From sequence record PP456877.1: a DNA stretch of 64,000 bases; one strand, given 5' to 3'. The notes under the pieces are model-generated. The model saw only the letters and a list, made by a program, of their open reading frames with translations. It made no database searches and was not told where the DNA came from. Positions 61,788-64,000 of this stretch are shown piece after piece (position 1 is the first letter of the stretch; every line of letters begins with the position of its first letter). Position numbers and translations under genes: made by a program.

Positions 61788-61970
61788 TTAAAGCTTAGAG
61801 ATCATTTCGACATATGCATCGACAAACCTTCTGTTTACCACTACATCACCATTCCCACGAGTGATATATCTCCCAGTTAATATAGCTACCGATCTGGCTT
61901 CACGTTCATCTCGTTCGGCTTGTGATAAACGTTCCGGGTTACGTCGAATAATTTCACGAATATTAGACAT
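61788..61970 (-). CDS. Small basic protein, 60 aa, moron-like
   Basis: AAGGGGA RBS, own promoter-like TATATCAC (62002-62009), enclosed by the direct repeats. Confidence 0.8.
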   Translation of the reverse strand: MSNIREIIRRNPERLSQAERDEREARSVAILTGRYITRGNGDVVVNRRFVDAYVEMISKL

Positions 61971-62962: not shown

Positions 62963-63166
62963 TTATTTTGCTTTTAGCCATTCTTCTAATGGCGGTAAAT
63001 ATTTCTCATGTGCCCAGTTAATAATTGTTTCTACAACAGGACCCTGTAATTCAAGGTTACCTGAGATTTCATGTGGTTCATCAATAGATAGAACCCATGT
63101 ATGTGGCGCAATGCGTTCAGTTGCTTTAGTTAGATACACATCAGGCATTAACGTTAAATTAAGTTG
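62963..63166 (-). CDS. gp55: nvRNAP beta-prime subunit gp55, terminal exon (gp56.1)
   Basis: QLNLTLMPDVY...EEWLKAK is the sequence following NADFDGD in phiKZ gp55. The track's GTG start is the intron's last three nucleotides. Confidence 0.9.
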   Translation of the reverse strand, partial: QLNLTLMPDVYLTKATERIAPHTWVLSIDEPHEISGNLELQGPVVETIINWAHEKYLPPLEEWLKAK

Positions 63167-63554
63167 CACTATCTTCGTACAGCATCGTCAGCATCATGTC
63201 TAAAAATCATCCATTGGAAGACATGTCGCTGCTGTACCGTCCACTTAATATCTCCCGACATTAAGTAACTGCTCTAGCTTTCACTAGATGGTGAGACTAT
63301 ATCTTCTTCCCAGAGGGAAGCCTTCTATTTCGGATCACTTAATCCTACTCTACTCCCTTGTCTGCTTTCGCAGTGGTTTCGATAGTCGTTGAACGTTCTT
63401 CCTATATTGCCTTACGGTAATACGTAGAAGCTTCGCTGCTGATTGTCCAATCCTAACACTTTTCAAACCGTTACATTTTAGCTTTCGCTATCTGCTTTGG
63501 TAGTTAGGCTCTAAGGAGGTTCCAGCAATTAAGAAGGTTAGGAGACCAATTAAA
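63167..63554 (-). mobile_element. Group I intron (IA-like), 388 nt, no ORF
   Basis: P AATTGCTGG, Q AATCAGCAGC, R TTCAACGACTA, S AAGATATAGTC. P1 GGAGAU/GUCUCC with U-G at the splice site, P3 CCTTCT/AGAAGG, terminal G at 63167. Confidence 0.92.
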
Positions 63555-63572
63555 ATCTCCGTCAAAATCAGC
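63555..63572 (-). CDS. gp55: 18-nt micro-exon of gp55 encoding ADFDGD
   Basis: GCT GAT TTT GAC GGA GAT between the terminal G of one intron and the U-G 5' splice site of the next. Confidence 0.9.
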
Positions 63573-64000
63573 CGTGTTGTTCAGTATCAGTCGTTAATTG
63601 ATACCCGCACCATTACGTGCAGCTCTAGCTTTCACTAGAAGACCAGACTATATCTTCACCCTTCCTTTCGGAGTGGGGTGTCTCCCATTTCGAGTCACTT
63701 GACCCTACATCCTATTTCTAGGACCGGTGCACCTGATACCGTAATAGTCGTTGAACCTTCTCCTATTCCTAAATGGAATGTTACGGAGCTTGGCTGCTGA
63801 TTGGCCCTACCTAATCTTTTTCAAACCTTGGCTTTGTCTTTCGACTCGCAGTGGTAGATTAGTTTAACAGGATATCCCAGCAATTAGAGAGAACTCAACC
63901 CAACGATTACTCATTGGGGGAACTAGACTTGATTAACTTAATAAGGTATTTATCAAGCACCCCATTCTTTTCAAAGATTGCTCTTCGAACAGTATTCGGA
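63573..64000 (-). mobile_element. Group I intron (IA-like), 5' end outside the window
   Basis: AATTGCTGGG, AATCAGCAGC, TTCAACGACTA, AAGATATAGTC, P8 hairpin with GAAA loop, terminal G at 63573. Confidence 0.9.
63907..63999 (-). CDS. C-terminus of intron-encoded ORF, probably a homing endonuclease (gp56 position)
   Basis: Open frame from the window edge PNTVRRAIFEKNGVLDKYLIKLIKSSSPNE*, ending upstream of P3. No catalytic motif visible here. Confidence 0.55.
   Translation of the reverse strand, partial: PNTVRRAIFEKNGVLDKYLIKLIKSSSPNE

Follow-up and report, generated by a model that had tools for sequence, protein, structure and literature searches.

An 18-nt exon encoding the catalytic loop of an RNA polymerase lies between two group I introns in phage KEN49

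Can an RNA polymerase gene still give rise to an intact catalytic subunit when the codons of its metal-binding loop are cut off from the rest of the reading frame on both sides? This question is raised by Pseudomonas phage vB_Pae3705-KEN49 (KEN49), a member of the genus Phikzvirus, whose gp55 gene, encoding the beta'-N catalytic subunit of the non-virion RNA polymerase (nvRNAP), is located on the minus strand at the end of the 64,000-nt stretch of record PP456877.1 analyzed here (the window) and runs past the window end. The final 1.1 kb of the window match KEN49 with 100% identity. A preliminary description of this DNA proposed that two tandem group I introns flank an 18-nt exon holding all three catalytic aspartates and that skipping of this exon could act as a regulatory switch.

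Exon structure of the KEN49 gp55 gene

The gp55 region of KEN49 was followed beyond the window in a 9.1-kb, gene-oriented locus (L001), whose coordinates convert to window positions as 68001 minus the L001 position, a relation confirmed by script. The gene consists of four exons of 1137, 108, 18 and 204 nt (L001 1461-2597, 2948-3055, 4429-4446 and 4835-5038), separated by three group I introns from now on referred to as A, B and C. In-silico joining of the four exons yields a protein of 488 amino acids with 0 differences from spliced phiKZ gp55. Insertion sites are found after FHRN (codon 379, intron A), KAPN (codon 415, intron B) and ADFDGD (codon 421, intron C), all of them between codons and in conserved motifs, placing three introns within 42 codons and 2.2 kb of gp55. 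Exon 4 (window 62963..63166, minus strand) was assigned by reading frame; it starts with CAA CTT AAT TTA ACG (QLNLT...) and encodes QLNLTLMPD...EEWLKAK followed by a stop codon, that is, residues 422-488; in PDB chain 7OGP_A, with its tag of 20 residues, the identical stretch is numbered 442-508. Chain A of 7OGP, in which PHIKZ055 is joined to PHIKZ056.1, has no break across FHRN-PTLQ, KAPN-ADFDGD or DFDGD-QLNL, and KEN49 gp55 is identical to it over the stretches compared.

Only one gp55 locus could be identified in KEN49 by tblastn, and a second copy that would make splicing unnecessary was rejected on this basis. As the enzyme is dead without the DFDGD loop, this single locus argues for accurate removal of all three introns in vivo. 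In GenBank PP456877.1, gp55 is annotated as a truncated 379-aa 'RNA polymerase beta subunit' without a spliced CDS, and about 10 short 'hypothetical protein' CDSs on both strands cover the three introns (248963-252540). The correct product is complement(join(248963..249166, 249555..249572, 250946..251053, 251404..252540)), and the small ORFs are spurious. In the predicted spliced product, the tryptic peptide APNADFDGDQLNLTLMPDVYLTK covers both micro-exon junctions, while the corresponding peptide of an exon-skipped KAPN-QLNL junction would be APNQLNLTLMPDVYLTK.

Two complete group I cores enclose the catalytic loop codons

Searching with the Rfam group I model RF00028 (model length 1-253, gathering score 50) identified two cores in tandem on the minus strand, one at 63944-63623 (intron B) and one at 63575-63272 (intron C), each matching the full model from 1 to 253 with 76.1 bits and E=1.5e-17. 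Both score above the gathering threshold, bearing out the proposed tandem arrangement, although completeness within the window applies to the two cores only, as the upstream intron runs off the window end. Between the two introns, from the base after the terminal G of intron B (G63573, the intron end already proposed) to the base preceding the start of intron C (63554), there are exactly 18 nt (63572-63555, minus strand) with the sequence GCTGATTTTGACGGAGAT, read as GCT GAT TTT GAC GGA GAT and encoding ADFDGD, residues 416-421 of gp55. This micro-exon, established by direct reading and by the in-silico join, contains all three catalytic aspartates, D417, D419 and D421. In the phiKZ nvRNAP, DFDGD comprises residues 417-421 and coordinates the catalytic Mg2+ (PMC8287921), a numbering that fits an upstream exon ending with N415. 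Neither the 64-kb window nor the 9.1-kb gp55 locus contains a second site encoding DFDGD. The junctions joining N, ADFDGD and QLNL are genuine according to the PA7 allele, the in-silico join and 7OGP_A, with N being codon 415 and located outside the window.

That the exon is 18 nt long and in frame, as had been pointed out, is true; however, this follows automatically from all three introns sitting between codons, carries no extra meaning and is not a sign of a switch. Likewise, the proposal that two splicing events are needed for an active subunit stands insofar as precise removal of both introns is required, but three events are needed in KEN49 because a third intron interrupts FHRN/PTLQRG (here and below, a slash marks the insertion site), 108 nt upstream of intron B and outside the window. 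In bacterial beta', FHRN/PTLQRG corresponds to the conserved motif NRAPTLHR. Intron A comprises 350 nt on the minus strand (L001:2598-2947, equivalent to window 65403-65054) and is matched by RF00028 at L001 2600-2899 with 89.1 bits over the full model length. Its edges, TTT CAC CGA AAT upstream and a final G followed by CCA ACG CTT downstream, are fixed by the uninterrupted phiKZ sequence, which represents a natural empty site. A P1 candidate, GAAAU/GUUUC, can be read from the sequence, though it is not the best pairing in a duplex scan. Long versions of intron A (1244-1250 nt) with a NUMOD4/HNH_3 ORF occupy the same site in fnug, KTN4 and OMKO1.

Intron C

Intron C is a 388-nt group I intron without an ORF (63167..63554, minus strand), located between D421 and Q422 and ending in G63167. 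Its boundaries are supported by the RF00028 match and by natural empty sites: phiKZ reads GAC GGC GAT/CAA TTG AAT CTT, running uninterrupted from GGCGAT into CAATTGAAT with the 388 nt missing, which fixes the intron as 63554-63167. It is missing at exactly this site in phiKZ, KEN51, T2P, 6B and KTN4. Conversely, a 97% identical intron of 1524 nt with an HNH ORF is found at the C site in PA7, fnug, Brmt and OMKO1, and a 93% identical ORF-less intron of 362 nt in PS119XW. These relatives share the D421/Q422 site, the flanks GGAGAT/CAACTTAA and 93-97% ribozyme identity with KEN49, the ORF in the first four being I-HmuI-like. Unlike KEN49, all five lack intron B and have ADFDGD joined to the upstream exon, and compared with the HNH-bearing introns of 1524 nt the 388-nt intron of KEN49 has lost a 1.1-kb endonuclease ORF. 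No description of intron C or of intron A was found in the literature searched.

The P1 helix of intron C can be read directly at 63541..63560 on the minus strand. It consists of GGAGAU at the end of the micro-exon (63560-63555), a loop with the P10 strand, UUUAAUUG (63554-63547), and the guide GUCUCC (63546-63541), with U63555 and G63546 forming the wobble pair at the 5' splice site. This helix is recovered in both MFE and centroid folds, in agreement with the U-G pair noted previously, and among the exon/guide pairings scored none is stronger (duplex -8.8 kcal/mol) or more specific. Pairings of the same guide with exon 2 (-3.0 kcal/mol) and exon 1 (-4.5 kcal/mol) are not in splice-site register. 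The GGA codon of the micro-exon is thus also required for P1 of intron C. The P10 pairing suggested earlier between TTAATTG and the exon is present, but it is weak: the candidate formed by UUAAUUG and CAACUUAA comprises only 7 bp with a bulged C (-0.9 kcal/mol).

Intron B and a hairpin resembling its 5' splice site

Of the 1373 nt of intron B, the 3' 428 nt lie in the window (63573..64000, minus strand), comprising the ribozyme core and the end of an HNH ORF; this part was assigned by RF00028 and by 98-99% identity to phiKZ. The upstream exon ends in AAA GCG CCT AAT at L001 3055 (equivalent to 64946), the intron starts at the equivalent of position 64945, and the 5' splice site after KAPN is located 945 nt past the window end. 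Intron B is missing in PA7, fnug, Brmt, OMKO1 and PS119XW, where KAPNADFDGD is continuous; in PA7 the sequence reads ...LCLKAPNADFDGD without a break. Based on core identity (98.9%), the same site after N415 and the same HNH/NUMOD ORF layout, intron B is the known phiKZ gp55/gp56 intron (PHIKZ055 - PHIKZ056 - PHIKZ056.1). For introns in gp55, PMC11512511 refers to Ceyssens 2014.

The suspicion that the layout might already have been reported is therefore justified for the phiKZ gp55/gp56 intron but not for the arrangement as a whole. As phiKZ has the upstream intron only, its published gene structure does not include the micro-exon layout. There is no phiKZ intron after D421 or N379, and ADFDGD opens a 219-nt last exon plus stop, unlike in KEN49. 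The phiKZ protein PHIKZ056 contains Pfam HNH_3, three NUMOD1 and one NUMOD4 domains. Its KEN49 homologue (L001:3090-4094) has a single in-frame stop at codon 18 (GAA to TAA), outside the window, in contrast to the intact phiKZ ORF, and is, by its sequence, probably an inactivated homing endonuclease. A divergent patch is also observed in this ORF at about codons 46-75. Its last 30 codons plus stop reach into the window (63907..64000, minus strand), as judged by frame and identity to PHIKZ056, overlapping the guide-sequence region and the P2 5' strand of intron B, with the stop codon located in the P2 loop. In T2P, intron B is only 484 nt long (L006:3908-4391) due to an internal deletion that cuts the HNH ORF to 37 codons, retaining the ORF start and the last ~15 codons including the hairpin described below. 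The 5' end of intron B varies as well. In phiKZ (L002:3057-3071) and 6B the intron starts with GGACAATTGAATAAC. Within this sequence lies the 9-mer CAATTGAAT, the same nine bases with which the exon after ADFDGD begins; KEN49, KEN51 and T2P differ at this end, having CGGATAAGCAAATAAC or CGGACAAGTAACTAAC. The 9-mer possibly records an ancient recombination event close to the C site.

The authentic P1 of intron B is less conspicuous than that of intron C. The exon ends in U, and only UAAU/GUUA (4 bp) can be formed, spanning ~1 kb, with -0.9 kcal/mol for the exon end AAAGCGCCUAAU. By comparison, a local hairpin at 63927..63958 (minus strand) pairs GCUUGAUAAAU (63958-63948), a 5'-exon-like strand, with GUUAAUCAAGU (63937-63927) in the guide region of intron B, forming 11 bp with one mismatch and ending in a U-G pair (duplex -7.5 kcal/mol). 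It is kept in KEN49, KEN51, T2P, including the HNH-deleted T2P intron, and 6B, with one mismatch in phiKZ. The AAU at 63950-63948 within it, ahead of the intron B core and ending the guide pairing, is the sole candidate in the window for the codon of the N preceding the loop, and it resembles an exon end because it closes a hairpin with the guide region with a U-G pair last. Reading ...MGCLIN (frame 3, window end) as the upstream exon with GCUUGAUAAAU/GUUAAUCAAGU as P1 was rejected, as the frame-2 HNH ORF occupies this stretch in the ORF maps of phiKZ and KEN49, and the true exon ends in ...LCLKAPN 1.4 kb upstream, in agreement with the numbering in PMC8287921 and with intron-less PA7. The placement of the N codon inside the window thus did not hold. 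The true N is codon 415, 1373 nt upstream of the micro-exon, and the AAU in the window lies inside the HNH ORF and is at most a mimic of the 5' exon. The hairpin may compete with the authentic 5' splice site of intron B, or it may itself serve as a cryptic one. A covariation analysis of P1 and P10 was attempted, in which the guide region was invariant in all B variants and offered no variation to score, and no convincing P10 pairing was found for intron B.

Three related introns with long and short forms

Introns A, B and C all end in G, their exact excision restores the reading frame, and intron-less alleles fix their boundaries to the base. They share common core segments while differing in peripheral helices, and in a small alignment of 6 sequences drawn from the A, B and C families, 26 of the 61 consensus pairs called by RNAalifold are maintained by compensatory changes. 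Each intron is known in a long, HNH-bearing and a short, ORF-less form (A, 1244/350 nt; B, 1372/484 nt; C, 1524/362-388 nt), with HNH_3/NUMOD ORFs found in intron B of phiKZ, intron C of PA7 and fnug and intron A of fnug. None of the gp55 introns of KEN49 carries an intact endonuclease, A and C being ORF-less and the HNH ORF of B having the stop at codon 18. As sister copies contain HNH ORFs, the KEN49 introns would be immobile derivatives of mobile introns and, by the state of these ORFs, now persist as passengers. Matches of 70-80% to core segments of introns A and C were also observed in unrelated phages, namely in Aeromonas, Serratia, Providencia and Flavobacterium phages and in Twort nrdE, as well as in Pseudomonas N4-like and PB1-like phages and PhiPA3, an indication that this lineage of group I introns is widespread among phages.

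Origin of the micro-exon

Mapping the three sites in 11 phages revealed five combinations. Intron B alone is present in phiKZ, KEN51, 6B and T2P, and intron C alone in PA7, Brmt and PS119XW. KTN4 combines A with B, fnug and OMKO1 combine A with C, and KEN49 has all three. Among 50,697 phage records, B was found in 40 and C in 10, with both present in KEN49 alone. An exact-pattern search for the junction of B, micro-exon and C, or for the C junction alone, returned only PA7 itself from IMG/VR and no match in metagenome and GTDB genome contigs.

Synonymous markers in the flanks segregate perfectly with intron B and with intron C. B-bearing alleles read AAAGCGCCTAAT/GCTGA(T/C)TTT or GCGGATTTT, and B-less Phikzvirus alleles AAGGCTCCAAAC/GCAGATTTC; at the second site, C-bearing alleles read GGAGAT/CAACTTAA and C-less alleles GGCGAT/CAATTGAA. 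The first 14 nt of the KEN49 micro-exon match B-type alleles while its GGA codon matches C-type alleles; KEN49 is B-type through GCTGATTTTGAC and C-type from GGAGAT on. This switch of markers places the crossover between the 9th and the 15th base of the micro-exon. Judged by these markers, the micro-exon itself marks the point where a B-type and a C-type allele were joined by recombination, and the flank pattern is the signature of homing or recombination between B-type and C-type phages and not of a designed arrangement.

Proposed explanation

We consider it highly probable that gp55 of KEN49 is split by three related group I introns, that KEN49 is a recombinant of B-type and C-type alleles and that constitutive self-splicing rebuilds a protein identical to that of phiKZ. 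Introns B and C would be independent mobile elements, each found elsewhere with its own HNH endonuclease, whose predicted homing sites are 18 bp apart and flank the codons of the catalytic loop; since KEN49 inherited both, the loop became an 18-nt exon. Each ribozyme would recognize its own splice sites, with the guide sequence of intron C forming P1 with the six bases at the 3' end of the micro-exon and intron B, after its own terminal G, ligating exon 2 to the micro-exon at its first base. Because B and C would use non-overlapping segments, either order of splicing is possible in principle. Three constitutive self-splicing reactions would then produce the mRNA for gp55. Since KEN49 has been propagated as an isolate and has gp55 only once, splicing is predicted to take place and to be efficient in vivo. 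The intron identities, exact boundaries, restored ORF, presence/absence polymorphism and recombinant flanks are established here. Location at essential codons, where imprecise deletion would be lethal, helps explain why the introns persist, in line with the general view of introns at essential positions (PMC12908238). Some observations count against this explanation. Besides the weak P10 of intron C and the lack of a convincing P10 for intron B, the 4-bp P1 of intron B, spanning ~1 kb, must compete with a much stronger local mimic, and in a long-read transcriptome of phiKZ, splicing at gp56 was not evident under the conditions used (PMC10914365).

One alternative is the regulatory switch, in which skipping of the in-frame exon would give a full-length, catalytically dead gp55 that tunes late transcription. 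Exon skipping is reported from phage Twort, where one gene has three introns of the group I type that are related to each other (Landthaler and Shub 1999, cited in PMC3073962), introns A, B and C of gp55 likewise share core sequences, and the guide region of intron B in KEN49 is complementary to bases 2-9 of exon 4 (8 bp, -5.6 kcal/mol). This match, however, is offset from P10 geometry, overlaps P1 bases and is A/U-rich, so it may be due to chance, and the guide of intron C has no in-register pairing to the end of exon 2. Overall, the pairing analysis shows no clear route to skipping and the switch is without support from the sequence. The in-frame length, being automatic for introns between codons, does not favor it either. 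Moreover, the combination of B and C exists in one isolate among ~50 relatives and sits on a recombination joint, giving no sign of selection, and a loop-less subunit might poison polymerase assembly. We therefore regard a switch as unlikely, although skipping at a low level is conceivable in view of the Twort precedent. A related and distinctly improbable scenario starts from the distance of only 12 nt between the 3' splice site of B and P1 of C: simultaneous docking of substrates by the two folded cores may be impossible, which would force an order of splicing, and a measurable share of the product would then be skipped, loop-less gp55 acting as a dominant-negative brake on late transcription. 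If true, this would be the first functionally consequential alternative splicing in a bacterial virus, the phage being one that forms a nucleus and thereby separates splicing from translation.

Two further readings were considered, and to both we give very little credence. The KEN49 record could be a chimera assembled from B-type and C-type phages in one lysate, with no molecule carrying both introns; the same study deposited the related phages KEN19 and KEN51, and the layout is found in the KEN49 record alone. Yet the joint is confined to ~5 bases (GACGG) common to B-type and C-type micro-exons, far under assembler word size, which makes such a chimera very unlikely. In addition, the ORF-less introns A (350 nt) and C (388 nt) of KEN49 are absent from the other loci of the 11-phage matrix, and the remaining locus is collinear and coherent. 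Alternatively, at least one intron may no longer splice, gp55 being a pseudogene and the polymerase being supplied otherwise. The loss or breakage of all three intron endonuclease genes does show that parts of the locus are decaying, but the exons have no amino-acid change relative to phiKZ gp55, the ribozyme core scores equal those of relatives and there is a single gp55 locus in a propagated isolate whose nvRNAP requires the catalytic loop of gp55 (PMC8287921). Constitutive self-splicing of a recombinant gene is thus the preferred explanation.

Relation to known systems

Several components of this arrangement are already known, namely intron B, the structure of spliced phiKZ gp55, multi-intron phage genes and mitochondrial mini-exons. 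As in KEN49 gp55, several related group I introns are located in one ORF in the three-intron gene of Staphylococcus phage Twort, but gene and phage are different. Very short exons between group I/II introns 'occur regularly in mitochondrial genes' (PMC10352661), and even single-base mini-exons have been reported (PMC12308204; PMC5436844). These are organellar and often rely on protein-assisted splicing, whereas the KEN49 exon belongs to a phage gene and corresponds exactly to the catalytic metal-binding loop. PhiPA3 gp210 is an HNH endonuclease of a group I intron in a virion RNAP gene, showing presence/absence relative to phiKZ (PMC11620839, PMC12908238). In both cases, a nucleus-forming jumbo phage of Pseudomonas has a group I intron in the gene for an RNA polymerase subunit; however, that of PhiPA3 affects the virion polymerase at another site and is linked to endonuclease-mediated phage competition, while KEN49 gp55 has no intact endonuclease. 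Literature searches for KEN49 gave unrelated matches only, and searches for phage group I micro-exons found nothing relevant.

The novelty lies in the particular combination: in one RNA polymerase gene of a phage, three introns fall within 42 codons and an exon of 18 nt coincides exactly with the catalytic loop. The layout is a useful, well explained model and not a new principle. It shows how densely mobile introns can be packed around the most conserved codons, with two introns bracketing the whole catalytic aspartate loop, and the recombination joint from which it originated is captured in KEN49. The locus also provides a test case for the shortest exon tolerated by two adjacent group I ribozymes, for mutual exclusion of neighboring homing sites, as co-occurrence of B and C is almost never seen, and for the fate of introns once their endonucleases decay.

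Additional DNA downstream of gp55

In KEN51 (L005:4665-5053), and also in PA7 and T2P, ~390 nt of extra DNA separate gp55 from the gp57 homologue, and gp55 ends in different codons (...EEWLKS) where this DNA is present. A fourth intron was sought in this stretch in all three phages, and no group I signal was found. The ORFs on its antisense strand are similar to those found opposite the PHIKZ058.1-like gene (window 61788-61970), and the extra DNA looks like a relocated or duplicated small gene.
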